This document shows, piece by piece, positions 21,766-64,000 of a stretch of 64,000 bases of DNA. Numbering within the stretch: position 1 is the first letter of the stretch; each line of letters starts with the position of its first letter. Below the pieces are notes generated by a model. That model had not been told where the DNA came from. It saw only the letters and a program-made list of their open reading frames with translations, and ran no database searches. The position numbers and the translations under genes were made by a program. The stretch covers positions 147,778 to 211,777 of the IMG/VR virus record IMGVR_UViG_3300037245_001419; one strand, written 5' to 3'.

Positions 21766-21766
21766 A

Positions 21767-22122: not shown

Positions 22123-22158
22123 TAAAAACTGAAGTACCCTCTCAAATACTTCAGTTTT
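22123..22158 (-). terminator. terminator hairpin built from two inverted AACTGAAGTA motifs
   Basis: AAAAACTGAAGTA-ccctctcaaa-TACTTCAGTTTT. Confidence 0.7.
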
Positions 22159-42159: not shown

Positions 42160-42254
42160 TCTTGACTCCCTGTGACCTGTATTAAATATAACTCTTTAGT
42201 GAATACCTGTCAATAAGATATTAACTAAAGAGCTAAATAAATTAGCTCTTTACT

Positions 42255-42620: not shown

Positions 42621-42930
42621 TGCGTTAACTCCTTAACTTATCTATGAACTAAGATAGCTTATTATATAACACCCGTCAACAATTAAATACATAAAAGATT
42701 AAATAAATTAAATACTGTTTTAAACACCCTATAAGCCCCGATAATTTAAGCCATACAATCACACTAGAAAACAAAAACACCCCGTTTAAATAGCTTTAAA
42801 ACACATATAAACAGTAGTTAACCACCCTATAACACCCACAACATCACCTGGTTAATGTACAAAATACACTAAGGTATATAGACGTAAAAAAGCCCCTGTT
42901 TAGGGGGCTTAATATACTTTAGTTTGGGGC

Positions 42931-43476: not shown

Positions 43477-43679
43477 TTCGTTAACTCCTTAACTTATCTA
43501 TGAACTAATATAGTTCATTAACTAAAGTATGTCAACACCTAAACACAAAAAAGAATAAATAAATTGCTTTAGCTTTTAAACACCCTATAAGCTCACTATA
43601 TACAAGGTGATACCATATCACCAAACACAAAAAAAGCCCCTTGATAGGGGGCTTATAACGGCTTAAATAGTACTTTAGT

Positions 43680-43922
43680 TTATACTAAATGTATCCTAAA
43701 GTTTGCTTTACTTTTATAATAATATTTATCGGGGTAATTTTCAGCTTTAACTTCCCTATGTTCTTTTAACATTGCTAAAACTTCAGTCTCAATATGTGCA
43801 CCTATACAATTTTGATATGTAGCATCGCCCACTAAATGCGGTATATTCTTTTTAATCACATATACGGTAAACTCTGTAAATTTGTCGGTCACTTTTGTGA
43901 TACTAACTATAAAATTTTTCAT
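43680..43922 (-). CDS. hypothetical protein
   Basis: own promoter and AAGGAG. Confidence 0.75.
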   Translation of the reverse strand: MKNFIVSITKVTDKFTEFTVYVIKKNIPHLVGDATYQNCIGAHIETEVLAMLKEHREVKAENYPDKYYYKSKANFRIHLV

Positions 43923-44068
43923 TGTCGTTAACTCCTTAACTTATCTATGAACTAAGATAGCTTATTAAATAACCGTTGTCAACATAAAAGAGAAAATACT
44001 TTAGTTTAGACAATAAAAAACCGCTCTAAATTAGAGCGGTTAACGAATCAAGATATACTTTAGTTATT

Positions 44069-44590
44069 TTAGGCTGCGATTTGTCCCTGTCTACTTTTAC
44101 CCGCTTTTGCTGAGTCGTGAACGTCTCGAATTTTATTCATTGACCAACTTTTGCGGTTATAACATTTATACCAATTCGGCTTAAACGTCCACGATTTTTT
44201 ACCTTTATTCCAATAAAAGCCTAAAGCTTTAAATAATTGGCCGTTGGTTTTATACTCTTCAATATTTGTTATATACATGTATATACCGCAAATTTCAACA
44301 TCAAAGGTAAAATTACCAAAAAACTGTTTTACTTTCTGATATACATCAAAAATCTCTAAATCCACTGAAGCGCAAAAATCCTCAAAATTCTCAATAGTTG
44401 CACTTTCAGCGCTCCCAATATCGGAACCGATATTTTTACTTAGATACTCGAATTCTGCAAAAATCGCTTGAAAATCCTTAACACTTCCCCCTTTGTCGGG
44501 GTGATTCTTAACGGCTAAATTCTTATATTCCATTTTTAATTCAAATGCATCAAATCCGCTCTTTAGTTCTGTAAAATATTTAATATCCAT
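44069..44590 (-). CDS. J-domain (DnaJ-like) protein
   Basis: ELKMEYKNLAVKNHPDKGG (HPD motif); C-terminal LGFYWNKGKKSW domain. Confidence 0.85.
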   Translation of the reverse strand: MDIKYFTELKSGFDAFELKMEYKNLAVKNHPDKGGSVKDFQAIFAEFEYLSKNIGSDIGSAESATIENFEDFCASVDLEIFDVYQKVKQFFGNFTFDVEICGIYMYITNIEEYKTNGQLFKALGFYWNKGKKSWTFKPNWYKCYNRKSWSMNKIRDVHDSAKAGKSRQGQIAA

Positions 44591-44773
44591 TTTGTTAACT
44601 CCTTAACTTATCTATGAACTAAGATAGCTTATTAATTAACACCCGTCAACATAATAATAACAATTAATAAAAATAAATTACTTTAGTTATTTGGGTTATT
44701 TAATATCGGGGGTCTCACTAAAGATACAAATAAAACCCCGATATTGTCAAGGGGTAAAGAGAAATAATATACT

Positions 44774-44992
44774 TTATACTATTTTATATGTGACTTTACG
44801 ATTATTGATATAATCTAAAGAGAAACTATTTTTATGGTTTTCTGAATACTCTATAGTATTCTCAATATGTTTATTAACCGCTTTCATCCTTAAGGTGCTA
44901 AACTCTGTTAAGGTTGCGCTTTCTTTAATGATTAAAGTATCACTATATACTTTTGAACCTTTAATCTTTGAAGTAATTCTTATAATATTCAT
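44774..44992 (-). CDS. hypothetical protein
   Basis: ORF; AACTAAAGT directly before the ATG. Confidence 0.6.
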   Translation of the reverse strand: MNIIRITSKIKGSKVYSDTLIIKESATLTEFSTLRMKAVNKHIENTIEYSENHKNSFSLDYINNRKVTYKIV

Positions 44993-45612
44993 ACTTTAGT
45001 TAATCCCTATAGTTAGTTGTATATGTGTATTAATTCGGTTTTAAGGGGTATAGAATCAACTTTACCCGATACATTAATATAGTGTGTAGATGTAATCTTT
45101 TTACCGCTTAAAGGCATGTTTAAACCCTTGAAATTTTCACCAATTGTCAACCGCTCAAAAGTCATAATAAACCCCCTATGAAACTAATCTTTCAACATAT
45201 GTTATAGTTACATTGACATATTGTGAACCTTGACAATACAACATATATAGACCATATATAGCTAAACCAATAATAATAATTCTTAACATCCTAATAACTC
45301 CTTATATCGGCTTAACATCACAGTAAGACAATTTACCCTCTAAAACGTTAATCATAGCGTTATACTCTTCATTACTGCTTATAGTCCTATAATAGTCTAA
45401 AGTAATGTTAAGGGGTAATTCTACGATATTTTGAGGTAATTCAGCAATTGTCATATTTAAACCATTTAACTAATTAACTTATCTATTATTAATAATAGCT
45501 AATTAACTAAGTTATTACAAGTAAAAAATGCATAACATACAAAATAAATACACTTTAGTTGTAAACACAAAAAAGCCCCTAAACAGGGGGCTAATCTAAA
45601 GTACTTTAGTTA

Positions 45613-45849
45613 TTATGCTAAAAAATAAGAGGGTTTTGGTAATTTAGTAAATAACTGTTTAAATTCGGATTCTGTAAAATAACCCAAATCAATTATTTTA
45701 TTAGTTTCAATATCAGTATATTGCACTCTAATGTTGTCTAAATGCAAAGTAACTCTAATTTGTATCTCATTAAAATACAAATGTTTAGGCTCAATAGTAT
45801 CTACTTTAAACCCTTGACCCTTAAACGCTGTAATTGTTAAATTTTTCAT
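45613..45849 (-). CDS. hypothetical protein
   Basis: own promoter and AAGGAG. Confidence 0.75.
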   Translation of the reverse strand: MKNLTITAFKGQGFKVDTIEPKHLYFNEIQIRVTLHLDNIRVQYTDIETNKIIDLGYFTESEFKQLFTKLPKPSYFLA

Positions 45850-45979
45850 ATTGTTAACTCCTTAACTTATCTATGAACTAATATAGTTAATAAACTAACT
45901 AAAGTCAACATAATTTACAATATATCCTTAAACACAAAAAAACCCCTAAACAGGGGCTACATAAGAGATTAAATATACT

Positions 45980-46291
45980 TTAGTTTATACGGGCGAATTC
46001 AACACTTTTTACAATTAATACGTTATCGGGGTACATTTTATTATTTGAGCTATGTTGATTATTAATAGAAGTGTACACTTCATACTCAAAGTACAATTTA
46101 AAACCGTTGGGGCCGTCCGTATAGTTAAAGAAACGTACCCCGTTTTTATTCCAGTTATCAGATAAATATTTGCTCCATAAAGCAAAAAACGTTTCTTTTT
46201 CATACAATGAATCAATAGAGGTTAAAACAGAATTTAACGACTCAATAACACCCCTATTAAAATGTACACTTTCCGACAACACAACACACAT
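45980..46291 (-). CDS. hypothetical protein
   Basis: ends AAC-TAA in the 10-mer. Confidence 0.65.
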   Translation of the reverse strand: MCVVLSESVHFNRGVIESLNSVLTSIDSLYEKETFFALWSKYLSDNWNKNGVRFFNYTDGPNGFKLYFEYEVYTSINNQHSSNNKMYPDNVLIVKSVEFARIN

Positions 46292-46805
46292 AATATAAAC
46301 CCCTATCCTTTAACGATTGACTGAAGTTGTGACGATATAGCTATATATTCAGCTACATTTTGAGGTGTACTATTTGCGATACATTCCGCTTTCAATTCGT
46401 TCTTTCTTACATTTAATTCGTTTAATTCTAAAACTGACATTTGATTAACTCCTTAATCTGTGTAACTTATCTATGAACTAAGATAGCTTATTATATAACA
46501 CCCGTCAACATAATAATGCATAAAAGATAAAATAAATTAATTTATACCCATAGACACAAAAAAAGCCCCCTACATAGTAGAGGGCAAAATAGAAACGTGA
46601 TATACTTTAGTTTATAATAAACCGTTAACCTTTGATTGATTCACCTTTGAACGGGGAGCAGTGCACAAATTGAAAGATGTAATAGATTTGCGAGCGATTG
46701 AGATTTTTTGAATAGATTTAAACATATGTGATACCTTTTAGTTATTAACTTATCTATGAACAATAATAGCTTATTCATTAATATAATACAAGGGGAAAAT
46801 ATACT

Positions 46806-46967
46806 TTAGTTATAAACAGGCTTTACATGATACCTATATGCACCATATATATTATCTAATTTATCGGCTCGATTACGGGCGGTTTTTCGTTGGTGTGATT
46901 TATATTCTTTCAATACCTTTTTTGTGTGACCATCAATCAAAGTATAGCCTATTATCTCATTACTCAT
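46806..46967 (-). CDS. small conserved phage protein
   Basis: ARNRADKLDNIYGAYRY; start moved to MSNEI. Confidence 0.7.
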   Translation of the reverse strand: MSNEIIGYTLIDGHTKKVLKEYKSHQRKTARNRADKLDNIYGAYRYHVKPVYN

Positions 46968-47082
46968 ATTATACCTACAAAGTTTATTATGTAACAAATA
47001 TAGCTTATTAACTAAAGTATAGTACATATAATTTTATTTAATCAATCGCCCCGATATACTACACAACATAAGATTATTATAG

Positions 47083-47160
47083 TATATTTAAGATACCCCA
47101 ACGGTTGACTACTATATCTCATTTCGAGAACAACGGGGAGGAGTGAAGACTATTCATTAG
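47083..47160 (+). ncRNA. candidate small RNA, copy 2
   Basis: ATACCCCAACGGTTGACTACTAT...ACGGGG...AGTGAAG...TTCATTAG shared with copy 1. Confidence 0.4.
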
Positions 47161-47232
47161 AATATAAACATATACTAATATACTTCAGTTAAAAAAAAAG
47201 CCCCGTATATACTAGGGCCTATTTACTTTAGT

Positions 47233-47478
47233 TTAAATATTATGTTTAATCTTATCTTGAGTAATTAAATTCTCAGTCATATATACACCGCTCAAAGCTT
47301 GATTCTTAAGTTCATTACTAATAAAACCGCTTTCAGCCATTACTAGTAATATCTTATCGTTAGAGCGTGAATTTATTACACGGGCCGTTAATGAAGGCCA
47401 CCGCTTATCAATACAATCATTTAAACGTCTTATATCTGCTTTTGATAACTTGATTGATTTCTTTTCTAAAACTGCCAT
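47233..47478 (-). CDS. hypothetical protein, first gene of the leftward array
   Basis: own promoter and AAGGAG. Confidence 0.75.
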   Translation of the reverse strand: MAVLEKKSIKLSKADIRRLNDCIDKRWPSLTARVINSRSNDKILLVMAESGFISNELKNQALSGVYMTENLITQDKIKHNI

Positions 47479-47539
47479 TTAATTAACTCCTTAACTTATC
47501 TATGAATAAAGATAACATATTAACTAAGATATACAAGGG

Positions 47540-49260
47540 GAAAATATACTTCAGTTACACGGGACAATCTAAAGAGATTAAACATACAATATATTAAGCC
47601 ATATAAGAGCATATACACCCACTAAAATAGATCTTTAATACCATAGGATACAAAAGCCATAAAAGAGCTTATATACACCTTAAAATAGAAACTAGATATA
47701 CTTCAGTTATAAACGCATAAACAAAACATATTATATACAAGGGAAAAACAGCGTATACTTTAGTTATTTGAGCCAGTTCTCAATGAGCACCAAAAACTAA
47801 AAAAACTAAACATAGCTAATTAACGATGCTCATAATTAGTTAATAAGCTAATAGGATATACTAGAGTTATTATAGTTACTTTAGTTATTAGACCCCCTAT
47901 GTAAACTAAAGTAAAATAAACCTTCATATAACGTACATTATGTAAACTACTCATATGTGCACTTGACAAACTCAAAAAAGTATTACATACCATATAAGAA
48001 GCAAACTAAAGTATTTTATACCGTTTTTACTCTGTCCCCACACAATCCACCAGCACAGTATATTATATAACGCTAATATAGATAGATTCGTAAGTTGTAA
48101 CCACTACAAAGATATATTCATAACCATAAGCTAAAGCACTTTAGTTTGTAACCAATACAACAAAGGAATCAATCTATATCAGTATATGCTAATATGTAAT
48201 CATACTTCAGTTGTACCCGTAACAACTTGTAATGAGTACAATGTAACATACACCACCGCCATGGTACGATGACAAGATGTAACCAATACAACTTAGTACA
48301 CACCACATATATGTAACACACTTTAGTTTGTACTCATTACAACGTAACATTGTAACCATTACATGTATACACTAAAAGAACACTAATAACTAAAGTAAAT
48401 GTCATATGTACAGTAAGGTACGAAAACTTTAGTTTCTTTAGGCGATTAAAGCTCAAAAACAGCACATTTGCGCTGACGGTACTTTCAGGCCGTGTCCTAT
48501 GTGATTATACCCAACCCCCTACAAAAGCCCTTAAGCACACCTTAAAACGTATTTAAAGAGCTATGCAACTTAGCTACAAACTAAAGTAGTATATGATGAT
48601 ATACTTACGGACTAATCAACATAAACCCTTTATGTCAATACGACAGTATGTACTTAATGTACAATATACATACAGATCTACTTTAGTTTACCATCATATT
48701 ATAATATTAGTATATCATCATACAGTCATGGATTACTTTAGTTTATTAGTATATGATGATATTAGCATACAGTGATATACTCATGCACCTATATTAGTAT
48801 ATCATAATATACTGTGTCTTGCAAACCTTAGTGTCAGACTTACACTAAGGTAGGGTCCCCAGGGGTGATGGTTTCCCCCTCCTCCACGAGAGCCAATATA
48901 AGTCTCTCAGAGGGTGGCCGACTCTATATAATTCCGTTTCTCTAAAAAAATTTTAGAATAAAAAATTACTGCAGGGGTCGATGTACAAACTAAAGTAGTT
49001 TTAGTCGCAACTGAAGTAGTTCTTATTGTTAACTGAAGTATAACATTTACTCCATTATTGCCGGATACTGGCAAATTCAGCGTAATACTTATATATCCCT
49101 TGTATTTGCTGTTTAAGACGTTTCTAAAGCAATCTAAAGATACTCACCCATCTGTATTGTAAGAACTGACTAAGGGCCTGGAAGGGTATCTAAAGTGTCT
49201 AATTCGTCTATTGCTGTCCGACATTGTCTATTGTATTAGTCTAAGGCCAAAGGAGTAGAA
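47540..49260. other. 1.7-kb non-coding repeat-rich block (candidate genome terminus or origin)
   Basis: no credible ORF; about 15 AACTRAAGTA copies, TTGTA-N5-TACAA x7, TAGTATATSAT x4, GC-rich hairpins at 48826-48925. Confidence 0.6.
48095..48364. repeat. cluster of 7 TTGTA-N5-TACAA palindromic boxes
   Basis: starts at 48095, 48146, 48211, 48227, 48277, 48328, 48350 (three with one mismatch). Confidence 0.8.
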
Positions 49261-49266: not shown

Positions 49267-49563
49267 TTAGTTTACTTCCCATGGTTCTTCAGATGATGGT
49301 GTAAGGAACTCAAATAAGATATTCTTAAGTAATTGAATATAGTCTTCATTTGAGATATTTGGATCGAACTTAACAATACCATTAGTTATTTGATCAACAG
49401 CGTAGTACATGAAATCATCGAACTGAGAGTTATCACTGGCTTTGTGTAGATCTGGTTCTTCCAGATATGTGTCAACTAAAGTAGCATACCTGTTGTAAGT
49501 TACTACAAAAGCTTTCGTCTTGTCAGAAGGCCCCACCAATCTATCTAGAGATTCAACATTCAC
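49267..49563 (-). CDS. HLDTLV...PWEV family protein
   Basis: SLDRLVGP ... EPWEVN*. Confidence 0.8.
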   Translation of the reverse strand: MNVESLDRLVGPSDKTKAFVVTYNRYATLVDTYLEEPDLHKASDNSQFDDFMYYAVDQITNGIVKFDPNISNEDYIQLLKNILFEFLTPSSEEPWEVN

Positions 49564-49743
49564 TTAGTTAACCTCCCATGGTTTGTTGTTAACGCCTTCT
49601 AACTCTGCATGAGTATAAAGTCTTGGTTTGAAAATGCTTGGAATAGTCATACCTGGTGTAGGGTTGCGATTAAACTCTTCTGCAGCACAGAACACAGGTT
49701 TTGTTTTAACGAGCGCATCCAGGTGTTTGACTAGATCAATCAC
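49564..49743 (-). CDS. HLDTLV...PWEV family protein
   Basis: GTG start; KHLDALVK ... KPWEVN*. Confidence 0.8.
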   Translation of the reverse strand: MIDLVKHLDALVKTKPVFCAAEEFNRNPTPGMTIPSIFKPRLYTHAELEGVNNKPWEVN

Positions 49744-50069
49744 GGAGGACATCCTTCGTCATAATCATATGTGTGTGGCCCATCTTCGCCAGCTTTCATT
49801 TCGACCACCCAATCCAGATATTCTTTAGATGGTTCATCTAGATCAAAGCGATGATCAATCGTTCCGTCTCTCCATTTCGCTACAGATATGAGAACCTTCG
49901 TACCTTTTGCTATACGAGCACATTGATCCATGACCCATGTCTTATGATGTTCTCCATCGATTCCACCATACTTCTCAATCCAAAGTAACATCCAATCATG
50001 TATCTTGTAAGAGCTATATTCATTTGGATCAGCCATTGGGAATTCCCCTAAGTAATTTTCTTCAGACAT
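49740..50069 (-). CDS. conserved phage hypothetical protein
   Basis: YGGIDGEHHKTWVMDQ motif. Confidence 0.8.
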   Translation of the reverse strand: MSEENYLGEFPMADPNEYSSYKIHDWMLLWIEKYGGIDGEHHKTWVMDQCARIAKGTKVLISVAKWRDGTIDHRFDLDEPSKEYLDWVVEMKAGEDGPHTYDYDEGCPP

Positions 50070-50352: not shown

Positions 50353-50408
50353 AACTAAAGTATAATAGAAACTTATAGACGTGTCAATAGAATAAATGTA
50401 CTTTAGTT
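50353..50408. promoter_or_regulatory. class-II bidirectional promoter
   Basis: minus TTGACA-17-TATACT and plus TAGACG-17-TACTTT, bounded by inverted AACTAAAGTA. Confidence 0.75.
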
Positions 50409-51965: not shown

Positions 51966-52127
51966 ATGGCTTACTATCCTAATCATCCACCTACGCTATA
52001 TGGTGACGATGCAGATTATTTTTTAAACAAGTTAGATGAGATTGCTAAGCTTCCTAAGCAAGTAATATCTGATGAAAAGCGTAAGAAGTTTGAAGAGTTA
52101 TTCAGAAGATCCGGTATGCGACTCTAA
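51966..52127 (+). CDS. small hypothetical protein
   Basis: GAGG RBS; stop overlaps the convergent gene. Confidence 0.6.
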   Translation: MAYYPNHPPTLYGDDADYFLNKLDEIAKLPKQVISDEKRKKFEELFRRSGMRL

Positions 52128-52468
52128 AGTACTTCCCATGGATCACACTCACGTTGATCATTGTTCATCATATATCTGCAGAGGTTATCGATATTAGCTG
52201 AAGTATCGTAACCAGGTTTGTAGTTATATTGTTTTAGTACATTGGAGTATAGTTTGCTACCATCGTAAACCCTATTTCTATTTTTGTATTCAACTGTGTA
52301 TAAGCAGTTATTAGGATCAGCCATATCAACCCATCGTCCAATCTTGATATCACCATCAACTAAAGTATAATTCATTTTCAGTGTATAGGCTTTTAACATA
52401 GCGTTATACAATCTATCACATTCAGGAGTTCTTGGCCCAACTAAAGTATCCAGGTGTTTAGGGTTCAT
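52124..52468 (-). CDS. HLDTLV...PWEV family protein
   Basis: MNPKHLDTLVGP ... DPWEVL*. Confidence 0.85.
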   Translation of the reverse strand: MNPKHLDTLVGPRTPECDRLYNAMLKAYTLKMNYTLVDGDIKIGRWVDMADPNNCLYTVEYKNRNRVYDGSKLYSNVLKQYNYKPGYDTSANIDNLCRYMMNNDQRECDPWEVL

Positions 52469-52668
52469 GTTACTTCCCATGGTTCGTTGTATGAATCTGA
52501 GAAGGATATGACACTAATATCACATCCTTCTGGACATAGATATTCGAGAGTTTTTGATATTCCATCTGGGGTATATTCTAAGTATGTAAGCATAAGTTTA
52601 AATTGTATATGATGGATTTTGCAATGATCGCAAGGCCCAACTAAAGTATCAAGGTGTTCTATATTCAC
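52465..52668 (-). CDS. HLDTLV...PWEV family protein
   Basis: EHLDTLVGP ... EPWEVT*. Confidence 0.85.
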   Translation of the reverse strand: MNIEHLDTLVGPCDHCKIHHIQFKLMLTYLEYTPDGISKTLEYLCPEGCDISVISFSDSYNEPWEVT

Positions 52669-52669
52669 T

Positions 52670-53020
52670 TTAGTTTACTTCCCATGGTTCATAAGAACTA
52701 TCCGTATTGCGAGCAAGCATTTTACATTTCTCATCTAAAGACGTAAATCCAATATCGTCAGTAGTACCATTGATATCATGAGTTATATTATCATCGAACA
52801 CCCATATACACCCTGATGTATCCGTTTTAAATACCCTAAGCATTTTAGAACTAACTATGCCAGGGTTATCAATTTTTACTTCGATTGTAAATATACCATC
52901 AGATATAACATCCCCTACTACACAATCATAATACGTTAATAATATAAATTTGTGTAGTTTTTTATATAGATGGCACTTCGGCCCAACTAAAGTATCAAGG
53001 TGTTCAACTAGTTCATTCAC
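52670..53020 (-). CDS. HLDTLV...PWEV family protein
   Basis: GTG start; EHLDTLVGP ... EPWEVN*. Confidence 0.85.
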   Translation of the reverse strand: MNELVEHLDTLVGPKCHLYKKLHKFILLTYYDCVVGDVISDGIFTIEVKIDNPGIVSSKMLRVFKTDTSGCIWVFDDNITHDINGTTDDIGFTSLDEKCKMLARNTDSSYEPWEVN

Positions 53021-53021
53021 T

Positions 53022-53330
53022 TTAGTTAACTTCCCATGGGTTCGAGACATAGGTTAGAGAACTCGGTCTATAACGGCATGAGTACACATAGACAACAGCA
53101 TCAAATATTTCTGCTTTAATATCTTTGCGGACTTCGAAACGATCACAACCTACTTCAGTTATAAATCCTTCCTCGATAAGCCTATCTCTTGTGCTCTCGA
53201 TAATCTTTACTCGATTCTGAGATGGGAATAGAACTTCCCGTTCGACATCTCTATAGAACTTATCCCATATGATTCTCTCATACCCATCGGGTTTAACTAA
53301 AGTATCAAGGTGTTTAATGAGATCAACCAT
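53022..53330 (-). CDS. HLDTLV...PWEV family protein
   Basis: KHLDTLVKP ... NPWEVN*. Confidence 0.85.
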   Translation of the reverse strand: MVDLIKHLDTLVKPDGYERIIWDKFYRDVEREVLFPSQNRVKIIESTRDRLIEEGFITEVGCDRFEVRKDIKAEIFDAVVYVYSCRYRPSSLTYVSNPWEVN

Positions 53331-53511
53331 ACCACTCCATATCTAGAGTACATATTATTTTAACTCCACAGTTGGGACATTTACCATAAGCGTCTTTCAT
53401 GTAATATATTGTACCTTTTGGATAAGATTCTTTAATCTTCAGTACTTTAAACTTTACATACTTCCTGCAGTTCTCACATGTCTTTTCAGCATATTCTTTT
53501 TCAATTTCCAT
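53323..53511 (-). CDS. small zinc-ribbon protein
   Basis: CENC...CPNC. Confidence 0.7.
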   Translation of the reverse strand: MEIEKEYAEKTCENCRKYVKFKVLKIKESYPKGTIYYMKDAYGKCPNCGVKIICTLDMEWYG

Positions 53512-53512
53512 A

Positions 53513-53836
53513 CTAAAGTACTTCCCATGGTATTGGTTTAATATATATTCCCATAATAAGAAGTGCTTTAGCTTCTGTTCGGATTTTTTCAGGAGAATGG
53601 CATATCATACGATAGCTATCATATTCATACGTTATTACATTTTCACTATCTGACATATATTCACAATGTATTACTATACGTCCATTGTGTTGATTATAGA
53701 TTCTAATGGTATCCGTATTGATAATCTGTCTGTTACTATGCATAGCCTTTTTAAAGTCTTCACATACGTCATTAATTCGTATGGTACGCTCGTCCGGCCC
53801 AACTAAAGTATCCAGGTGTGTTATTCTACTGTCCAC
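53513..53836 (-). CDS. HLDTLV...PWEV family protein
   Basis: THLDTLVGP ... IPWEVL*. Confidence 0.85.
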   Translation of the reverse strand: MDSRITHLDTLVGPDERTIRINDVCEDFKKAMHSNRQIINTDTIRIYNQHNGRIVIHCEYMSDSENVITYEYDSYRMICHSPEKIRTEAKALLIMGIYIKPIPWEVL

Positions 53837-54186
53837 GGCTCACTGATTCCTTTAGATCTAATCAACATCCTACATTTATCATCGAGGTCAACCAATCCCT
53901 TTCCTTCTCTAGATATATTAGTAGAAATATTACTTTTAAATATGTACAATTGTACTTTAGTTTCGACATTAGTAATTATGTAACAAAGTTCATTCCTGGT
54001 TACATTACCGTTAAAATCTGCAGTATCAGCTAAAGCACCAACGCACATGTGATATGGATATTCATCAATAACATCATCTGCTTTAAGATCCATGGCTGGA
54101 AACTGAAGTATAAAGTCATACAGTTTTTGATGATGTGGGGATCTGCTCCCAACTAAAGTATCAAGGTGTTTTACAATCTCGTACAT
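53821..54186 (-). CDS. HLDTLV...PWEV family protein
   Basis: KHLDTLVGS ... EPWTVE*. Confidence 0.85.
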   Translation of the reverse strand: MYEIVKHLDTLVGSRSPHHQKLYDFILQFPAMDLKADDVIDEYPYHMCVGALADTADFNGNVTRNELCYIITNVETKVQLYIFKSNISTNISREGKGLVDLDDKCRMLIRSKGISEPWTVE

Positions 54187-54613
54187 ACTGCCCCAGGTTG
54201 TTATTTAGATCAGCGATGTAATCAGCTAGTTCCTTCCCTATGACACCATAAGGAAATAGTTCTTCACCGTGTTCAGTCTCTATAACTTTGCACCAACAGT
54301 CCTTCCCATCAAAGCAATCTTTAACTATCCACTTGCAAATGAACGGCTCTATATTCTTAAGGACAAACTCTGCAGTATCTTCATCCATATCGGTCAATAC
54401 TTTAGTTACCTTCATATTGTGTATATCAGTGATGTATTTAGCCATCTCTTTAGGCATACAGAAGTACTCGAACACTTCATAATCATTATCAGGCCATTGA
54501 TCCGTTACAACCAGATCTACATGGTCTCCATACTTATTAATACAACCTACGACCCACTTTAGTTTATATGAGTCTTCTTGTTGTTTAATGTATTTCTTCT
54601 CGTCCCAGGTCAT
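54161..54613 (-). CDS. hypothetical protein with internal duplication
   Basis: KWVV...KEMAKYITDIHN repeated as KWIV...KELADYIADLNN. Confidence 0.75.
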   Translation of the reverse strand: MTWDEKKYIKQQEDSYKLKWVVGCINKYGDHVDLVVTDQWPDNDYEVFEYFCMPKEMAKYITDIHNMKVTKVLTDMDEDTAEFVLKNIEPFICKWIVKDCFDGKDCWCKVIETEHGEELFPYGVIGKELADYIADLNNNLGQYVRDCKTP

Positions 54614-54990
54614 ACAACCTCATATATGTATATGGTGTTTTTAACAATGTCATCCCAGTATCGTTCAAGAGCAGGAGGATATATAACCATAGCACCTTTT
54701 TCTGTCGTAGCCACAGCTATAATATTTGCAGGATCTAGGCTTTGTATTACGTTGGTTGCAATCACGTCATCAACGTCATCACAGTTAACAATCTTATTAA
54801 TTGGCGTAAGTTCCATTAACTTTAGTTTCTCTTCCAGGGTCTCGACTTCTGGCAAATCTTTGACAAGTTTTTCGATAGAATCTGTCATTAATACTGGACG
54901 CATATCAACCGTAGCGTCAAGATCTAACGCATAACGGAATTTGTTATCTGAGTTTGTAACAACCAGATTTGCAACTATATATTTTTTCAT
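54610..54990 (-). CDS. hypothetical protein
   Basis: GGAG-TACTTTAGTT-ATG start. Confidence 0.7.
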   Translation of the reverse strand: MKKYIVANLVVTNSDNKFRYALDLDATVDMRPVLMTDSIEKLVKDLPEVETLEEKLKLMELTPINKIVNCDDVDDVIATNVIQSLDPANIIAVATTEKGAMVIYPPALERYWDDIVKNTIYIYEVV

Positions 54991-55008
54991 AACTAAAGTA
55001 TCTCCCAC

Positions 55009-55398
55009 TTAGTCTTCTAGATAATGGATTTCAGGTTCTGCAGATTCTTCATACATGACAATAGCGTACATATCTCTCATACCGGAACCATCAGCTATAT
55101 GTGGTTTGATCCAATCGAGGAATGTTTCTATCTCATCCTCATAATTTTTTATATTGCATCTACTAGATAAGTGCCATGCCTTCGATATTTTGTCAAACCA
55201 CATCTTTGCAACTGGATCTATTACACCGAAGTAATAACTTCCAGATCCATTCACAGGGTTCCTCATATCACAAAAATCTTGTATGACTTTAGATTTATCG
55301 TGGTCAATATCAAAGAGATACTTGCATGTTTCTATAATTTCTGGTGGGGTATTTTCGTGAAGTCTTGCCCCAAATATTAGTTCTGTGTACATTCCCAT
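55009..55398 (-). CDS. conserved phage hypothetical protein
   Basis: MGMYTEL...IKNYEDEIETFLDWI. Confidence 0.8.
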   Translation of the reverse strand: MGMYTELIFGARLHENTPPEIIETCKYLFDIDHDKSKVIQDFCDMRNPVNGSGSYYFGVIDPVAKMWFDKISKAWHLSSRCNIKNYEDEIETFLDWIKPHIADGSGMRDMYAIVMYEESAEPEIHYLED

Positions 55399-55411
55399 AA
55401 TTCCTCCGGTT

Positions 55412-55467
55412 AACTAAAGTATAATAGAAACTTGTAGACGTGTCAATAGAATTAATGTACTTTAGTT
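55412..55467. promoter_or_regulatory. class-II bidirectional promoter
   Basis: near-identical to 50353-50408. Confidence 0.75.
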
Positions 55468-55470
55468 TCA

Positions 55471-55621
55471 GCCGGAGAATCGGAATACAGGTGATTCTCT
55501 AAGAGAGTCTGCGACATGGCATAACATCTGAACGGTTTCTATAGAAGTAGGTGCAAGTTATATAGAGGTGCTAGTAAGATGGCCTAGGATAGTTGTACTC
55601 TGTCCTCCCAGACTCTTTTTT
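55471..55621 (+). ncRNA. candidate structured RNA or long 5' leader
   Basis: GC-richer; 8-bp hairpin, then an 11-bp long-range stem (55501-11/55609-19) enclosing further helices, ending in a T run. Confidence 0.45.
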
Positions 55622-55643
55622 AAACTAAAGTAAATAGGAAGTT

Positions 55644-56309
55644 ATGAAAACGATATTAATATTAATAGTGCTGCTATCATCTATGGGTTTTTCAAATCAG
55701 TGCATTAGACTTGACGATTCAGATGCTTATGTCGATTGTTTAATTAAGGCAAATGAGGGTAAAGAAGAACCAGAATCTAAACAAGTAGAGTATATAGAAG
55801 ATTATTATACACATAATGAGGATTCATTAAGAATATATACACTTGTCGGAGCTGGTTATACACAGGGAACCTTTACTAGTTTTAGTAAAATTAACATGTT
55901 TATTGGCGTTATACCAGAAGGTTGGAATAACGGAATTATGTTCAGTGTTAAGATTTCAAATACAAAACCATCTAATATAAAAGATACATCACCACATAAT
56001 TCTAAAGTTTACCGCATTGTCGATGGTGAGATACTTCAACTAAATTTAGGTTTTCCATTCCCATTGCATAATAATATATTTTTGATTCCTATTGTGGGAG
56101 TGGCATCGGTAGAGAGATACACCCAAATCCTCGATGGGGATGATGGTACATATCATGTAAAAAAAGATAGAGACTCTTATAATGTTTTTGGTATGGGGTT
56201 CTTATTTAAAACTAATCGTTTTATTTGGGGAGTTGACATTGAATATCCTTTTGATAGATTCCCAACGATAGGAATTAATATAGGATTATTTATTACGGAG
56301 TTAAACTAA
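55644..56309 (+). CDS. secreted protein, probable outer-membrane beta-barrel
   Basis: signal peptide; alternating amphipathic strands (FGMGFLF, WGVDIEY, IGINIGLF). Confidence 0.6.
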   Translation: MKTILILIVLLSSMGFSNQCIRLDDSDAYVDCLIKANEGKEEPESKQVEYIEDYYTHNEDSLRIYTLVGAGYTQGTFTSFSKINMFIGVIPEGWNNGIMFSVKISNTKPSNIKDTSPHNSKVYRIVDGEILQLNLGFPFPLHNNIFLIPIVGVASVERYTQILDGDDGTYHVKKDRDSYNVFGMGFLFKTNRFIWGVDIEYPFDRFPTIGINIGLFITELN

Positions 56310-56320
56310 AGTAGGTTACG

Positions 56321-56500
56321 ATGAAAGATATTAAGAAAGGTTACTACTGGGTAAAGTTTTACAACCATGATGTAATGCAAGTAATGTTATTTAATGGCAA
56401 GAATTTTGAAGGCTTCAAGAGTGACAAATTAATTCATGATGAGATAGAGGGTTACGAGTATATTGATTACCCACCAGTTGACTTGTGTATCGACAACTAA
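56321..56500 (+). CDS. small hypothetical protein
   Basis: MKDIKKGYYWVKF...; stop within the shared AACTAAAGTA. Confidence 0.65.
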   Translation: MKDIKKGYYWVKFYNHDVMQVMLFNGKNFEGFKSDKLIHDEIEGYEYIDYPPVDLCIDN

Positions 56501-56814
56501 AGTACTTCCCATGGCCCACCCTTCGATGGAGTACTCCACGATAGTGTAAAATACTTGGTTGCTAGTTCAGTAATATCGTCATGCATATATAGTAGAACAT
56601 AATATGGTCGTGAGGGTTCCCAGTATTTAGATTTCTCTAAGACATTTTTGTCTATAAGAACGATCCTCATATCGACAAACACTTCGTTATTGTAGAAATT
56701 ATGGAAAGGATCAGTAAGAGCCTTCACTATTTGCTTTACTAGTTTACCGTATATCTTAGATGCGAACTCAGAGGGTTCAACTAAAGTATCAAGGTGTTTA
56801 ATAATTTCAGTCAT
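56497..56814 (-). CDS. HLDTLV...PWEV family protein
   Basis: KHLDTLVEP ... GPWEVL*. Confidence 0.85.
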   Translation of the reverse strand: MTEIIKHLDTLVEPSEFASKIYGKLVKQIVKALTDPFHNFYNNEVFVDMRIVLIDKNVLEKSKYWEPSRPYYVLLYMHDDITELATKYFTLSWSTPSKGGPWEVL

Positions 56815-57005
56815 ACTTTAATATCTTTTTTATTGGCTATTACTAGTCCATTATCATTCAGTGTTTTAATAAATTCATGCCACTCTATGGTATATGGTGG
56901 AGCGTAATCGTACCCATCATTAAACAATTCACCTTCAACTACCATTTCCATCTTAGGAAATAATCGTTTTAACCGTTCAATCAATAATCTATGCTGGTTT
57001 TTCAT
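56811..57005 (-). CDS. hypothetical protein
   Basis: uses GGAGGT in the upstream WEV codons as RBS. Confidence 0.7.
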   Translation of the reverse strand: MKNQHRLLIERLKRLFPKMEMVVEGELFNDGYDYAPPYTIEWHEFIKTLNDNGLVIANKKDIKV

Positions 57006-57008
57006 ACT

Positions 57009-57311
57009 TTAGTTTACCTCCCATGGTGGGCATATTAAATAAAGTGTAGTAATTGATTTACAATAACTGTCTAATATGATATTAGCTATAGAACTTCCAT
57101 CATAATCAATTACAAATGGTTTTGCATTCTTGTATGTTATCTCAAAACGTTTAATATGATTATCAGTCACGTTGACAATTTTAATATTATTATCAGAATA
57201 TGTACAATCTTTAATTGATAGCTTATCAAATGTAGAAGTTAATAGATTGTGTAAATCTATGTATTCCTGGGGTATCGGCCCAACTAAAGTATCCAGGTGT
57301 TGTATATTCAC
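57009..57311 (-). CDS. HLDTLV...PWEV family protein
   Basis: QHLDTLVGP ... PPWEVN*. Confidence 0.85.
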   Translation of the reverse strand: MNIQHLDTLVGPIPQEYIDLHNLLTSTFDKLSIKDCTYSDNNIKIVNVTDNHIKRFEITYKNAKPFVIDYDGSSIANIILDSYCKSITTLYLICPPWEVN

Positions 57312-57312
57312 T

Positions 57313-57702
57313 TTAGTTTACCTCCCAGGGCTTCATAGAATCAATGTTTTTAATTCTATATGTATGATGAGTTCCCAGATGGGTGTTCGCTTGTGTCATA
57401 TAGCTGTTCTCAACCAATGATATGTAATGTTCCACATCACAATCTTCAAATATTATCATCACTTCACCCTCACCAGTTTTCATAAAGGTTGCATGTCCAT
57501 CATCTACTACAAGGTGCTTAATCTCAGTAAGACTACGCTCATAAAATGAGTGGTATAGTTCCATATCGGCATATACTTCATAAACAAACAATGGCTGATT
57601 TAAAAAATCATCCACAATGGTTGATAGATAGTGATAATATATTGGTGGTACACTACCAGATATTATCGGCCCAACTAAAGTATCCAGGTGATCGACATTC
57701 AA
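57313..57702 (-). CDS. HLDTLV...PWEV family protein
   Basis: DHLDTLVGP ... KPWEVN*. Confidence 0.85.
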   Translation of the reverse strand: MNVDHLDTLVGPIISGSVPPIYYHYLSTIVDDFLNQPLFVYEVYADMELYHSFYERSLTEIKHLVVDDGHATFMKTGEGEVMIIFEDCDVEHYISLVENSYMTQANTHLGTHHTYRIKNIDSMKPWEVN

Positions 57703-57703
57703 T

Positions 57704-58015
57704 TTAGTTTACTCCCCATGGATCACCATACGGTTTAGCATCTACTAGCATCATTAGAGTTTCAGTTATATATCTATCTGCAGCAGGATTTATGCGATAC
57801 ACAGGGTTTCTAGATGAGTATCGTCCTTTCATGGACTTAGTTACAAGCTTAAGTTTTATAAGTCTTTCCCTAAGTTCCACCACAGTACAATCGCTATAGA
57901 ACATAGCGGATGGATCTGTCAGTCCTGCTTTGATTAAAGGGCACATACTTTCTTGTCTGTCCGCATGTCTAGTACATGGTTTAATTAAAGTATCAAGATG
58001 TTTAATATCATTCAT
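57704..58015 (-). CDS. HLDTLV...PWEV family protein
   Basis: KHLDTLIKP ... DPWGVN*. Confidence 0.85.
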   Translation of the reverse strand: MNDIKHLDTLIKPCTRHADRQESMCPLIKAGLTDPSAMFYSDCTVVELRERLIKLKLVTKSMKGRYSSRNPVYRINPAADRYITETLMMLVDAKPYGDPWGVN

Positions 58016-58252: not shown

Positions 58253-58328
58253 AACTAAAGTATATTTTAAATATGTACTATTGTCAATAAAAATATAGAC
58301 AGATACATGGAATATATTTACTTTAGTT
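58253..58328. promoter_or_regulatory. class-II divergent promoters
   Basis: minus TTGACA-17-TATACT; plus TAGACA-17-TACTTT. Confidence 0.7.
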
Positions 58329-61317: not shown

Positions 61318-61373
61318 AACTAAAGTATAATAGAAAGTTATAGACATGTCAATAGAAAGTAATTACTTTAGTT
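61318..61373. promoter_or_regulatory. class-II bidirectional promoter
   Basis: third near-identical copy. Confidence 0.75.
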
Positions 61374-62772: not shown

Positions 62773-64000
62773 ATGACTAATACAAAAATATCAATATCTG
62801 CATTAATAGTTGGTGTGTTATTACTAACATTATTAATAAGCTGTGTCAATGACAACAACACAGTTTCAAGAGATTATGTAATAAAAATAGATAATAACAC
62901 AGGGTTGGAAGTTGATAGTGTTGTAGTTTATAGAAGTATAGATGATCATACAGATACTTTAGTTTACGTTAATCCAGTAGAGCCTATACATATAATCATA
63001 CCTATTGAAGGTGAAAAAGATTCTCAAGTTAATATTGAATATAGTTGTTATTATGAAACTGCTAAACTTATGGAAAAAACTGCAGTGTTCACACTTGACC
63101 AAAACTCAAGTGATATATCAACCACGGAATTTATTGACCATGTCAAAATAGATTCTTTGAAAGCTTTGGTATCTAAAATAGATTCTTTGGTATCAGATAA
63201 CAATGATGCCAATGTTAGTTCTAGCTTAAGTAGTTCCCTATTGTCATCTGAACCTGAATCATCATCAGAAGAAACTTTAGTTTCGTCATATTTAATGCAG
63301 AGTAGTTCAACTGAAGTGATTAGCTCATCTGAAGTGATTAGTTCAACTGAAGTGGTTAGCTCATCTGAAGTGATTAGTTCAACTGAAGTGGTTAGTTCGT
63401 CTGAAGTGATTAGTTCAACAGAGATAGTTAGCTCATCTGAGATAGTTAGTTCGTCTGAGATAGTTAGTTCGTCAGAGATTGTTAGTTCGTCAGAGATTGT
63501 TAGCTCATCAGAGATTATTAGCTCATCAGAGATTATTAGCTCATCAGAGATAGTTAGTTCGTCTGAGATTGTTAGTTCAACTGAAGTGGTTAGCTCATCG
63601 GAAGCAATTAGTTCGTCTGCAGCAATCAGCTCATCGGAAGCAATTAGTTCGTCTGCAGCAATCAGCTCATCAGAAGCAATTAGTTCAACTGAAGTAGTCA
63701 GCTCAACTGAAGTGCTTAGTTCAACTGAAGTAGTCAGCTCATCAGAAGCAATCAGATCATCTGCAGTAGTCAGCTCATCAGAGCGTATTAGTTCATCTGA
63801 AGTAGTTAGTTCTTCAGAAGCGGTTAGTTCATCTGAAGAATTAATTGAGAAATATATAGATAAGCGAGTTAATCAATATGGCACATCTACATATCAACCT
63901 ATAAAGATTGGAACTAGAGTATTGTTTAATGAAAATCTAAATTATTATGGTGCTGGTGTATGTTATGATAACGATCCAGATAATTGTGAAACATATGGAA
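62773..64000 (+). CDS. Ser-rich lipoprotein with FISUMP (Fibrobacter succinogenes major paralogous) domain, partial
   Basis: LLISC lipobox; SS[ST]E[VI][VI] linker; YQPIKIGTRVLFNENLNY...VCYDNDPDNCETYG; TTGACA-17-TATTAT promoter at 62716; open to the edge. Confidence 0.8.
   Translation, partial: MTNTKISISALIVGVLLLTLLISCVNDNNTVSRDYVIKIDNNTGLEVDSVVVYRSIDDHTDTLVYVNPVEPIHIIIPIEGEKDSQVNIEYSCYYETAKLMEKTAVFTLDQNSSDISTTEFIDHVKIDSLKALVSKIDSLVSDNNDANVSSSLSSSLLSSEPESSSEETLVSSYLMQSSSTEVISSSEVISSTEVVSSSEVISSTEVVSSSEVISSTEIVSSSEIVSSSEIVSSSEIVSSSEIVSSSEIISSSEIISSSEIVSSSEIVSSTEVVSSSEAISSSAAISSSEAISSSAAISSSEAISSTEVVSSTEVLSSTEVVSSSEAIRSSAVVSSSERISSSEVVSSSEAVSSSEELIEKYIDKRVNQYGTSTYQPIKIGTRVLFNENLNYYGAGVCYDNDPDNCETYG
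63301..63840 (+). repeat. 18-bp coding tandem repeat (about 30 units, SSSEVI-like)
   Basis: agttcaactgaagtgatt / agctcatctgaagtgatt units. Confidence 0.9.

Follow-up and report, generated by a model that had tools for sequence, protein, structure and literature searches.

Conserved short elements between small ORFan genes in hyperplastic regions have been described in T4-type phages as promoter-early stem-loop (PeSL) cassettes (Arbiol et al. 2010, PMC2839356; Comeau et al. 2014, PMC4122927). In these phages, indels, replacements and displacements between close relatives have crossovers in the elements, homologous recombination was proposed as the mechanism, and no dedicated recombinase is known. 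The locus investigated here, in an uncultured marine-sediment phage distantly related to T4, shares this setting, and PeSL-mediated shuffling is its closest precedent. Genuine PeSL-like units made of a stem-loop, TTGACA promoter, ribosome-binding site and ATG also exist in the window, by which we mean the whole 64,000-nt stretch analysed from the 212-kb record; one example lies near 25808, and one such pair flanks the 20.2–22.1 kb indel described below. However, the joints of the gene family studied here contain no promoter and are not intergenic. They overlap the ends of two coding sequences and keep the reading frame, so that the locus looks like a coding, in-frame counterpart of PeSL shuffling. 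In addition, the shared unit is one exact 10-mer used in both orientations about 160 times, inside as well as between genes, which is conserved in a relative with about 70% DNA identity, and some crossovers share only the 10–13 bp word.

In the T4 internal-protein locus (Repoila et al. 1994, as cited in PMC4122927), unrelated small proteins share a short constant N-terminal capsid-targeting leader, and the locus is polymorphic among relatives through swapping of the bodies behind that leader. Here there is also a constant C-terminal tag, there is no L/I-x-E protease site, nothing indicates late expression or packaging, and the constant part is frozen at the DNA level, not only as a peptide. 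In integrons, promoter-less cassettes sit in arrays behind one promoter, bounded by short imperfect inverted-repeat sites (attC) recombined by the integrase IntI, and are gained, lost and reordered. In our phage, promoter-less cassettes likewise sit in arrays behind one promoter, are bounded by short imperfect inverted-repeat sites and are gained, lost and reordered, but no integrase was found, the sites are 10 bp long rather than 57–141-bp attC sites, the joints lie inside coding sequence, and the host genome is a lytic-type phage. Finally, highly iterated short words of bacterial genomes, such as HIP1 of cyanobacteria and the DUS/USS uptake sequences, are 8–12 nt long, are enriched far above expectation in coding and non-coding DNA, are read in preferred frames, and sometimes occur in inverted pairs near gene ends. 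By analogy, the word described here resembles these in such features, but it occurs in a phage rather than a competent bacterium, is an imperfect palindrome, is concentrated at gene boundaries in the accessory regions, and coincides with recombination joints.

The joint repeat and the tagged gene family

An earlier note, made from sequence alone, had described a repeat of about 55 bp joining adjacent tagged genes, with a ribosome-binding site, stop, start and 10-bp hairpin. This observation was confirmed, with the joints at the described positions on the minus strand. A direct-repeat search returned a 58-nt family with copies, 88–100% alike, at 52634–52691 (reference; between m52670 and m52465), 57277–57334 (88%; between m57313 and m57009) and 57668–57725 (88%; between m57704 and m57313), the last with a mismatch in one arm (AACTAAATTG) that creates a TTG start. 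A fourth copy at about 52981–53040, between m53022 and m52670, carries a 6-nt longer loop and therefore fell into neighbouring repeat families, while degenerate copies lie at 52434–52491, 49529–49586 and 54146–54203 (60–66%). The stop (TAA), the GTG or TTG start 2 nt later and the GGGAGGT/GGGAAGT inside the W-E-V codons, 8 nt upstream of the start, were as described, and AACTAAAGTG pairs with TACTTTAGTT over 10 positions, including one G-U pair.

The repeat joins members of a family of small proteins of unknown function, known only from this phage clade, tagged [HY]LDTLVxP at the N end and PWEVx at the C end. The family has 12 members, not only those between 52124 and 57702, all on the minus strand. 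These are m57704 (57704–58015; 103 aa, subfamily B), with N-tag HLDTLIKP, the 10-mer one letter off (TACTTTAATT) and C-tag PWGVN; m57313 (57313–57702; 129 aa), with a TTG start, HLDTLVGP and PWEVN; m57009 (57009–57311; 100 aa, subfamily A), with a GTG start; m56497 (56497–56814; 105 aa, subfamily B), the last gene of array 1, which ends PWEVL*, GTACTTTAG supplying the stop codon; m53821 (53821–54186; 121 aa, subfamily A), with C-tag PWTVE; m53513 (53513–53836; 107 aa), whose GTG start overlaps m53821 by 16 nt and which ends PWEVL*; m53022 (53022–53330; 102 aa, subfamily B); m52670 (52670–53020; 116 aa, subfamily A), with a GTG start; m52465 (52465–52668; 67 aa), with a GTG start and PWEVT in an ATGA overlap onto the next gene; and m52124 (52124–52468; 114 aa, subfamily A), the last gene of array 2, which ends PWEVL* and has a second internal 10-mer at 52358–52367 (TLVDG). 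Two more members, m49564 (HLDALVKT) and m49267 (SLDRLVGP), lie at 49267–49752 and keep the peptide tag with other codons while the DNA 10-mer is lost. Only 4–5 of the family's joints have the full repeat, the others being ATGA overlaps, a 16-nt overlap or PWEVL* ends.

Subfamilies A and B are each homologous internally, but their cores do not match each other (hhalign probability 0.2%), and their AlphaFold2 topologies differ. In these models the tags have pLDDT below 50; for m52670, the core is confident and both tags are floppy. The arrays are promoter-less cassettes behind single sigma-70-type TTGACA-17-TATACT promoters. Ahead of array 1, the promoter TTGACA-17-TATACT(TTAGTT) lies at 58259–58287 on the minus strand, with the 10-mer overlapping the −10 hexamer and the start site. 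Array 2 is predicted to be driven from a 56-bp divergent promoter module at 55412–55467, bounded by inverted 10-mers, through a promoter at 55446–55418 on the minus strand; other copies of this module lie at 50353–50408 and 61318–61373.

The role of the hairpin in sequestering the start codon, proposed by the note, was not supported. The helix is possible in 10 distinct joints across the clade, with 99% of cells paired, four starts are GTG and one is TTG. However, as RNA the hairpin is weak and not unusually stable: four joints gave z-scores of −0.69 to +1.31 against shuffles, and the 10-bp helix was the minimum-energy structure in only one of them. Nine of 10 pairs never vary, and the only change breaks a pair without compensation. 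The inverted pair is present at only 3–4 of the family's joints, and members that lost the word have no replacement helix.

A genome-wide 10-letter word

The two hairpin arms are inverted copies of TACTTTAGTT and are not special to these joints, which the note had not recognised. With 82 + 79 exact copies, this is the commonest 10-mer of the 212-kb genome, and with up to one mismatch it occurs 174 times in the window against 15.6 expected, a count reached by none of 100 shuffles. Inside coding DNA there are 94 copies against 8.5 ± 2.7 when synonymous codons are shuffled, an 11-fold enrichment, and 49% of copies lie within 30 nt of a gene boundary, against 16% for random positions. The same word bounds non-family modules, lies in lipoprotein signal peptides and sits in fixed places in two promoter types. 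It is also the top 10-mer (67 copies) in a relative with 77% DNA-polymerase identity and about 70% nucleotide identity, where nine of 23 copies are conserved in place, against 6.4% of random 10-mers.

Within the tags, D-T-L-V is encoded as GATACTTTAGTT, V-N-stop as GTAAACTAAAGT, which is the reverse copy, and V-L-stop as GTACTTTAG. Among 33 non-redundant N-tags, the first Leu uses 6 codons and the Pro uses 4, so these positions change freely, while Thr is ACT in 30 of 30, the second Leu is TTA in 30 of 33 and Val is GTT in 31 of 32, compared to genome-wide usages of 0.39, 0.36 and 0.40 for those codons. Three members that lost the word still keep L-D-x-L-V. The tags thus carry two constraints at once.

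Crossovers at the tags and the word

Co-occurring relatives and Logan contigs of two sequencing runs carry the same cores behind different neighbours, with cassettes deleted, replaced and moved, and crossovers inside the N-tag (caccttgaTACTTTAGTT), the C-tag (ccatgggaagt) or bare copies of the 10-mer. Alignments to the related contig L007 break exactly at the tags and the word. Related contigs L008, L009 and L010 show N-tag to N-tag and C-tag to C-tag deletions and swaps, seen base by base, and the core of m53022 is found behind other upstream neighbours in L008 and L009; L011 belongs to the same set of rearranged contigs. Related contigs L035, L036 and L037 add further arrangements, including a cassette sitting in another operon. 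Overall, 13 of 22 homology-block ends lie within 12 nt of the 8-nt core of the word (ACTT[TC]AGT, either strand), against 2.8 expected (maximum 9 in 5000 trials), although in the conserved core region, compared with the distant relative, block ends are not linked to the word. All comparison sequences are metagenome assemblies, in which repeats can cause chimeric contigs, but the same arrangements recur in independent samples.

Modules outside the family, including an unrelated lipoprotein family, behave similarly. A plus-strand 221-aa ORF module, listed at 55623–56313 (−) and flanked by direct 10-mers at 55623–55632 and 56304–56313, is precisely absent in a contig of run X2 and in L035/L036. 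A 59-aa plus-strand gene module, listed at 56304–56517 (−), is 94% identical in L007, with homology starting and stopping at the two flanking 10-mers. Logan contigs gave joints at 55632>56317, 56794>57999 and 54616>55009, as well as at 20219>22081, which maps to the 10-mer in a lipoprotein lipobox. The corresponding module of three lipoprotein-like genes (20209–22136, minus strand) is absent in related contig L018 and in run X2; its left crossover is at the 10-mer encoding the lipobox TLVGC (20209–20218), and its right crossover is in a repeat made of a stem-loop (AACTGAAGTA..TACTTCAGTT) plus a promoter. No tyrosine integrase, serine recombinase, resolvase or GIY-YIG endonuclease was found in the 212-kb record, which CheckV rates 93% complete, while a RecA/UvsX-like ORF lies next to the DNA polymerase.

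Candidate mechanisms

The interpretation offered in the earlier note was partly supported: the constant gene ends do act as in-frame recombination joints and no integrase was found, translational coupling remains plausible, and the start-sequestering role of the hairpin is unsupported. We consider it most likely, with moderate confidence, that the repeat is the boundary between tandem members of a clade-specific family of small, presumably early proteins, in which short floppy tags ([HY]-L-D-T-L-V-x-P and [PG]-W-E-V-x) enclose a core that can be any of at least two unrelated predicted folds, and that the word marks gene and module boundaries throughout the accessory regions. In this view, the word, plus 10–40 nt of tag around it, is the only sequence shared by otherwise unrelated modules, so that the phage's own homology-driven, T4-type recombination and replication machinery would cross over there, and cassettes would be deleted, inserted, replaced and moved between operons while staying in frame and keeping a start, a stop and a ribosome-binding site. 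The abundance of the word and its freezing at the DNA level, the crossover positions and the differing (predicted) core folds come directly from our analyses, whereas we infer, from sequence alone, that exchange is driven by short homology rather than by a dedicated enzyme, and that adjacent genes are translationally coupled through the TAA-AGTG overlap, the non-ATG starts and the GGGAGGT inside W-E-V. Given that the word sits at gene boundaries and that selection keeps only recombinants with intact genes, the link between breakpoints and the word could partly reflect gene boundaries rather than targeting. Several crossovers share only 10–13 bp, which is short for ordinary homologous recombination, and short homology does not explain why one exact word is maintained across the divergence from the relative with about 70% DNA identity, or why its arms covary.

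Alternatively, but only tentatively, the 10-mer could be the recognition site of a dedicated sequence-specific phage or host protein, such as a nicking or cutting endonuclease, an unrecognised recombinase or a DNA-binding regulator; exchange would then be actively targeted to the word, with short homology secondary. The maintenance of the exact word in the relative with about 70% nucleotide identity, its conservation in place six times more often than random 10-mers, its enrichment over the synonymous-codon null, its fixed places in promoters and the crossovers sharing only 10–13 bp are consistent with this possibility. Furthermore, positions 2 and 9 covary (T-A..T-T 161 copies, T-G..C-T 39, mixed forms 1 and 1), and the same holds for the TC-centre variants, as expected for a dyad-symmetric site. 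The genome carries three HNH-endonuclease ORFs, but nothing links any of them to the word. Binding or cutting would be purely inferred, and a nuclease with 161 sites in its own genome would need protection or tight control. The related words TGCTTTAGCT and TACTTCAGTT are enriched but not linked to gene boundaries, indicating that enrichment and joint function need not have one cause.

It is less likely that the tags are purely peptide signals, for example a capsid-targeting or partner-binding leader like that of the T4 internal proteins, with DNA identity reflecting only recent gene conversion among paralogues and an incidental match to the genome-wide word. Consistent with this reading, L-D-x-L-V and W are kept even where the DNA word is lost, the tags are predicted to be flexible ends on different folds, as linear motifs are, and the flanking Leu and Pro are conserved with free synonymous change. 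A member of subfamily A and one of subfamily B also gave a weak predicted association (score 0.36 against 0.00 for the best control, in 2 of 3 runs). However, gene conversion would also homogenise the flanking codons, yet only the 10-mer codons are frozen, and the same word bounds non-family modules and is itself a crossover site there. Additionally, no T4-type L/I-x-E cleavage motif follows the N-tag, and the genes lie in sigma-70-type, presumably early, operons.

Least likely is that the repeat is kept mainly as an RNA device, with the hairpin hiding the GTG start until a ribosome finishing the upstream gene melts it, given the folding results above and that the arms are explained by a word occurring about 150 times elsewhere, in both orientations and including non-transcribed contexts, so that the hairpin is most likely a by-product of two inverted copies of the word.

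The phage genome and the joints of the tagged gene family

The 211,777-bp IMG/VR virus record whose last 64 kb form the window (34.8% G+C, CheckV completeness 93%) encodes a T4-type DNA polymerase, portal, tail sheath and baseplate wedge. Given that the polymerase is only 31-33% identical to those of cyano- and pelagiphage T4-likes, this is a distant, uncultured member of the T4 superfamily, and the two sequencing runs that hold it are marine-sediment metagenomes. The record is probably incomplete: the related contig L004 is 97% identical to window 64000-60369 and continues past the end of the record (L004:1-13431) into more ORFan genes, including a six-member tandem array of the same family (L004:8775-10700), and several of the window's proteins are on record on a 248,963-bp contig.

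The joints described in the earlier note are real and lie where it placed them. Twelve minus-strand genes of 60-129 codons, at 49267-49752 and 52124-58015, share an N-terminal tag x(2-6)-[HS]-L-D-x-L-[VI]-x-x (mostly HLDTLVGP) and a C-terminal tag P-W-x-V-x (mostly PWEVN or PWEVL). Four junctions have the full structure CCATGGGARGTAAACTAAAGTGAAT...CACCTKGATACTTTAGTTGGGCC; three of them are 88-100% identical over 58 nt and one has a 6-nt longer loop, while the other junctions are ATGA overlaps, a 16-nt overlap, or PWEVL* ends that abut a non-family gene or the end of the array. The full joint overlaps the last 6 and first 12 codons of the two genes, and the G-rich run created by the C-tag (GGGAGGT/GGGAAGT) lies 8 nt before the GTG/TTG start; stop and start overlap or abut, and the ribosome-binding site lies inside the upstream gene. 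Both alternative frames at the joint contain stop codons, and we therefore set aside read-through or frameshift fusion of neighboring members.

The interpretation offered in that note was partly supported. Its proposal that constant gene ends let cores be swapped in frame is supported by our comparisons and extends to a genome-wide joint word, whereas its proposal that a 10-bp hairpin sequesters the start codon is not. The arms can pair over 10 positions, but folding energies of the four joints are within about one standard deviation of shuffled sequences (z from -0.69 to +1.31), and the helix is the minimum-energy fold in only one of them. In ten distinct joints from the clade, nine pairs never vary, and the single change breaks a pair without a change on the other side. 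Members that have lost one arm have no substitute helix.

The family is clade-specific, as a profile of 32 members found only 26 representatives among 1.84 billion proteins, all carrying both tags; the N-tag pattern had no match in IMG/VR, and there was no near-DNA match in the phage collection searched. Pfam, PHROGs, Rfam and tRNA scans of the family and its neighbors gave no match, and this ORFan-rich accessory region had no Pfam or PHROG match for any gene. Naming members by window position, subfamily A (m52670, m53821, m52124, m57009 and relatives) and subfamily B (m56497, m57704, m53022 and relatives) are each alignable throughout and conserved in relatives, which led us to reject the idea that the cores are unrelated random ORFs. 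With the tags trimmed off, however, the cores of A and B show no profile similarity (hhalign probability 0.2%), and AlphaFold2 predicts an alpha-beta4-alpha core for A and an alpha-alpha-beta2-alpha core for B, both reaching pLDDT of about 80-96 while both tags fall below 50. Foldseek searches against PDB, BFVD and AFDB, and the ESM Atlas, gave no significant fold match for either subfamily; subfamily B had only weak winged-helix-like hits (E above 0.03, TM below 0.5). Members range from 47 to 129 residues, and subfamily A cores carry a second, internal in-frame copy of the joint word described below (T-L-V-D-G; window 52358-52367), conserved as a peptide in several relatives. Association between members through the tags received only weak support from a predicted A+B complex (0.36 against 0.00 for the best control, in 2 of 3 runs, with no interface reported). 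The genes lie in operons behind sigma-70-type promoters with no internal promoter or terminator, and are presumably early genes.

A genome-wide 10-letter word

The arms of the joints are copies of TACTTTAGTT, the commonest 10-mer of the genome, with 82 plus-strand and 79 minus-strand copies; with one mismatch allowed it occurs 174 times in the window against 15.6 expected. No flank is conserved beyond the ten letters (highest frequency 47% per position). The word is concentrated in the accessory regions, with 41 and 33 copies in the last two 20-kb bins, and near gene boundaries, with 49% of copies within 30 nt of a start or stop against 16% of random positions. It supplies the stop codon of 18 genes, as TAA in AACTAAAGTA or TAG in TACTTTAGTT, and lies in the first 25 codons of about 30 genes, read as T-L-V or, in reverse, T-K-V. 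Three lipoprotein-like genes (window 20209-20218 and 21718-21727; genome 33661) encode their lipobox T-L-V-G-C with the exact 10-mer. Inside coding DNA, with protein sequences and each gene's codon usage held fixed, there are 94 copies against 8.5 +/- 2.7, and the enrichment is therefore at the nucleic-acid level.

The word also holds fixed places in promoters. It fills the spacer next to the -35 box in seven copies of a promoter cassette of about 60 bp, TTGACA-TACTTTAGTTAAT... (more fully TTGACA-TACTTTAGTTAATWAGCTAT..TAATAATAGATAA..AGGAG..ATG), at window 12525, 25808, 29731, 34247, 36803, 38775 and 43535 on the minus strand, some of which are preceded by a stem-loop with arms AACTGAAGTA/TACTTCAGTT, an architecture like that of promoter-early stem-loop (PeSL) elements. 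It overlaps the -10 box and start site in promoters of the type TTGACA-17-TATACT(TTAGTT), including the three that drive the family arrays. A 56-bp divergent-promoter module bounded by inverted 10-mers is present in three copies (50353-50408, 55412-55467 and 61318-61373); at 61318 the ATG follows the word directly, which would give a leaderless or nearly leaderless mRNA if transcription starts after TATACT.

A relative whose polymerase is 77% identical and whose DNA is about 70% identical (G001, 104 kb) has the same top 10-mer, with 67 copies against 1 for the reversed control, as well as the same runner-up words. In aligned blocks, 9 of 23 copies are conserved in place, against 6.4% of random 10-mers. 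Four related words of the form T-RCT-TY-AGY-T, namely TACTTTAGTT, TACTTCAGTT, TGCTTTAGCT (e.g., window 53564-53573 and 54028-54037) and TGCTTCAGCT, are each 8-13-fold enriched in coding DNA over a synonymous-codon null. Positions 2 and 9 covary almost perfectly (A..T 161 copies, G..C 39, and mixed forms 1 and 1), and the same pattern holds in G001. This looks like a dyad-symmetric site read by a protein, or like words that spread as units. Only TACTTTAGTT is linked to gene boundaries, while the G..C and TC-centre words are spread evenly through the genome.

The tags are under two constraints. In 33 non-redundant N-tags from the clade, the first Leu uses six codons and the Pro uses four, and given this free synonymous change, selection there acts on the peptide. 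The three codons inside the word are instead frozen, as Thr is ACT in 30 of 30, Leu is TTA in 30 of 33 and Val is GTT in 31 of 32, although these codons are used genome-wide at 0.39, 0.36 and 0.40. Conversely, three members that have lost the word (HLDALVKT, SLDRLVGP, YLDSLVDF) keep L-D-x-L-V with other codons. The tag is therefore both a peptide motif and a DNA word. In the C-tag, Trp is invariant while the Glu and Val codons vary.

Exchange at the tags and at the word

Comparing the locus across relatives for core swaps with breakpoints in the constant ends, a test the earlier note had proposed, we found that several contigs from four JGI samples are 82-100% identical to parts of the window but are arranged differently. 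In contig L007, the Zn-ribbon ORF plus the N-tag of the next member are 87% identical to the window, and identity stops right after GATACTTTAGTT, where a different core follows. The 59-aa plus-strand gene is 94% identical in the same contig, with homology beginning at CCATGGGAAGTACTTTAGTT and ending at CCTACTTTAGTTT and unrelated sequence on both sides, and the m52124 orthologue is bounded by its N-tag and C-tag, its end having the word in the opposite orientation (PWEVN* instead of PWEVL*). In L009, with contigs L010, L011 and L008 covering parts of the same arrangement, the upstream region and N-tag of m57704 are fused at the word to the core of m56497, so that three members and one ORF are missing; the end of m53022 is fused within CCATGGGAAGT to the flank that follows m52124 in the window, so that three members are missing; and m53022 is preceded by another member rather than by the Zn-ribbon ORF. 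Four non-family junctions in this arrangement break at bare copies of the word, at 56304, 51929, 50864 and 55623. Contigs L035 and L036 give yet another array, with the N-tag of m57009 fused to the m56497 core and the 221-aa ORF module absent, while in contig L037 an m57704-like cassette sits in the array designated array 3.

Logan contigs of the two runs showed joints at 55632>56317, 56794>57999 and 54616>55009 with at least 34 nt on the shorter side, in addition to a single joint that goes back (57877>52639, side 38 nt), which in assembled contigs is not interpretable with respect to excised mini-circles. Over all comparisons, 13 of 22 homology-block ends lie within 12 nt of the 8-nt core of the word (ACTT[TC]AGT, either strand), against 2.8 expected (maximum 9 in 5000 trials), and three further ends lie at one-letter variants of the word. 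All comparators are short-read metagenome assemblies, in which repeats invite chimeras, but the same arrangements recur in independent samples and runs. Given that the word lies at gene boundaries, breakpoints at the word and breakpoints at gene boundaries are also partly confounded, although the base-level alignments do show the word itself as the last or first shared sequence. In the conserved core region, compared with the distant relative G001, block ends were not associated with the word (5 of 63 and 1 of 63, against about 2 expected).

The same pattern holds outside the family. Sequencing run X2 and contig L018 lack window 20220-22080, which holds three lipoprotein-like genes. The left crossover is exactly at the 10-mer that encodes the lipobox T-L-V-G-C of the next lipoprotein (20209-20218), where a different signal peptide and promoter are joined, and the right crossover lies in a stem-loop-plus-promoter repeat of PeSL (promoter-early stem-loop) architecture. 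The gene slot at window 54610-55008 has three alleles: a 132-aa ORF in the window, a 134-aa ORF with Pfam Phage_VG64 in L009-L011, and an empty slot holding only 13 nt in a run X2 contig. At its upstream joint, the 10-mer is present in opposite orientations in the window and in L009.

Candidate mechanisms, known systems and further sequence features

The record has no tyrosine integrase, serine recombinase or GIY-YIG endonuclease detectable in our searches, but has a RecA/UvsX-like gene beside the polymerase and three HNH-endonuclease-like ORFs. T4-type phages recombine intensely during replication, and short repeats are known substrates for deletion and insertion, as shown for PeSLs with mini-circles (PMC2839356). 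The most economical reading is therefore that the tags and the word are the only homology between otherwise unrelated modules, that crossovers fall there, and that selection keeps them because the reading frame, stop, ribosome-binding site and start all survive. While the abundance of the word and the positions of the crossovers are read directly from sequence, this route of exchange is inferred, and it does not explain why one exact word is maintained so strictly.

A dedicated reader of the word, whether nickase, recombinase or regulator, therefore remains a serious rival, inferred from sequence alone. In its strongest form, which we consider unlikely but not excluded, TACTTTAGTT and its relatives of the form T-RCT-TY-AGY-T may be the target of a so far unrecognized sequence-specific nicking or strand-exchange activity of this phage clade. 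That would make this a site-specific "universal adapter" system, moving gene cassettes and even swapping protein bodies in frame behind constant leaders and tails, in a lytic T4-like phage without any integrase. The only nuclease candidates found for such a reader are the HNH-like ORFs at genome 29183-29320 (-), 46351-46482 (-) and 101444-101575 (+), with open frames of 200, 216 and 118 aa, of which the 216-aa one scores just under the Pfam cut-off, and nothing links them to the word. We also considered a MotA-box-like middle promoter, as the word resembles TGCTTtA, and set it aside because the word has no fixed distance to a -10 box and occurs in both orientations inside genes; MotA/AsiA Pfam models found nothing, but were silent in the control genomes too and are thus uninformative. 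A literature search for the word and the tag peptides found nothing relevant, although hits for ACTTTAGTT included a paper on E. coli Tus-Ter (PMC4499146). The TerB site ends in ...AACTAAAGT, but given that the flanks of the word are not conserved, no longer Ter-like site surrounds it.

The closest known system is PeSL-mediated modular shuffling, with which the family joints share the Shine-Dalgarno sequence and start codon of the downstream gene at the 3' end, and a location at indels or replacements between close relatives with crossovers in the element. They differ from PeSLs in three defining features. No strong promoter lies inside them, as the only 11-of-12 matches on the gene strand lie ahead of the arrays, at 58287, 55446 and 50387; their inverted repeat spans the stop and start codons with no promoter following, in contrast to stem-loop-plus-promoter units elsewhere in the window, such as 22127-22156 and near 25808; and they overlap coding sequence rather than being intergenic. 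We therefore regard them as a coding, in-frame variant of this shuffling rather than as PeSLs. The joints also differ from integron cassette arrays, as PF00589 (IntI-type tyrosine recombinase) has no match in the 212-kb record while control genomes do match, and in place of attC sites of 57-141 bp with paired inner and outer repeats, the only shared inverted unit is the 10-mer, in joints of 49-58 nt of coding sequence. As in the capsid-targeting leader family of T4 internal proteins, a constant N-terminal leader of about 10 residues sits on cores without profile similarity and with different predicted topologies, but no L/I-x-E prohead-protease site follows the tag in our alignments.

How large lytic phages keep renewing their accessory genes is known only in outline, and PeSLs are the one described device in T4-type phages. 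Here the joint has moved into the coding sequence, where a 10-letter word, read as Thr-Leu-Val in one direction and supplying a stop codon in the other, lets unrelated protein bodies be exchanged in frame behind constant ends, while also bounding ordinary genes and lying in lipoprotein signal peptides. This offers a concrete, testable rule for where mosaic breakpoints fall in a whole phage clade, and a natural example of a standard connector for genes. The strict conservation of the word and the covariation of its arms suggest that something reads it, and finding that reader would be the real advance.

Two further stretches of the window stood out. The lowest-G+C stretch (29-30%), at 42000-48000, had no tRNA or Rfam match but has many G+C-rich hairpins with T-runs, reading as terminators on the minus strand, each next to a copy of the 10-mer. 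At 63300-63900, the coding sequence is a tandem repeat of 18/36-bp units (TCAACTGAAGTGATTAGC..., read as S-T-E-V-I-S...), and self-similar BLAST ladders suggest that the repeat register or number may differ between the window and contigs L004/L005.
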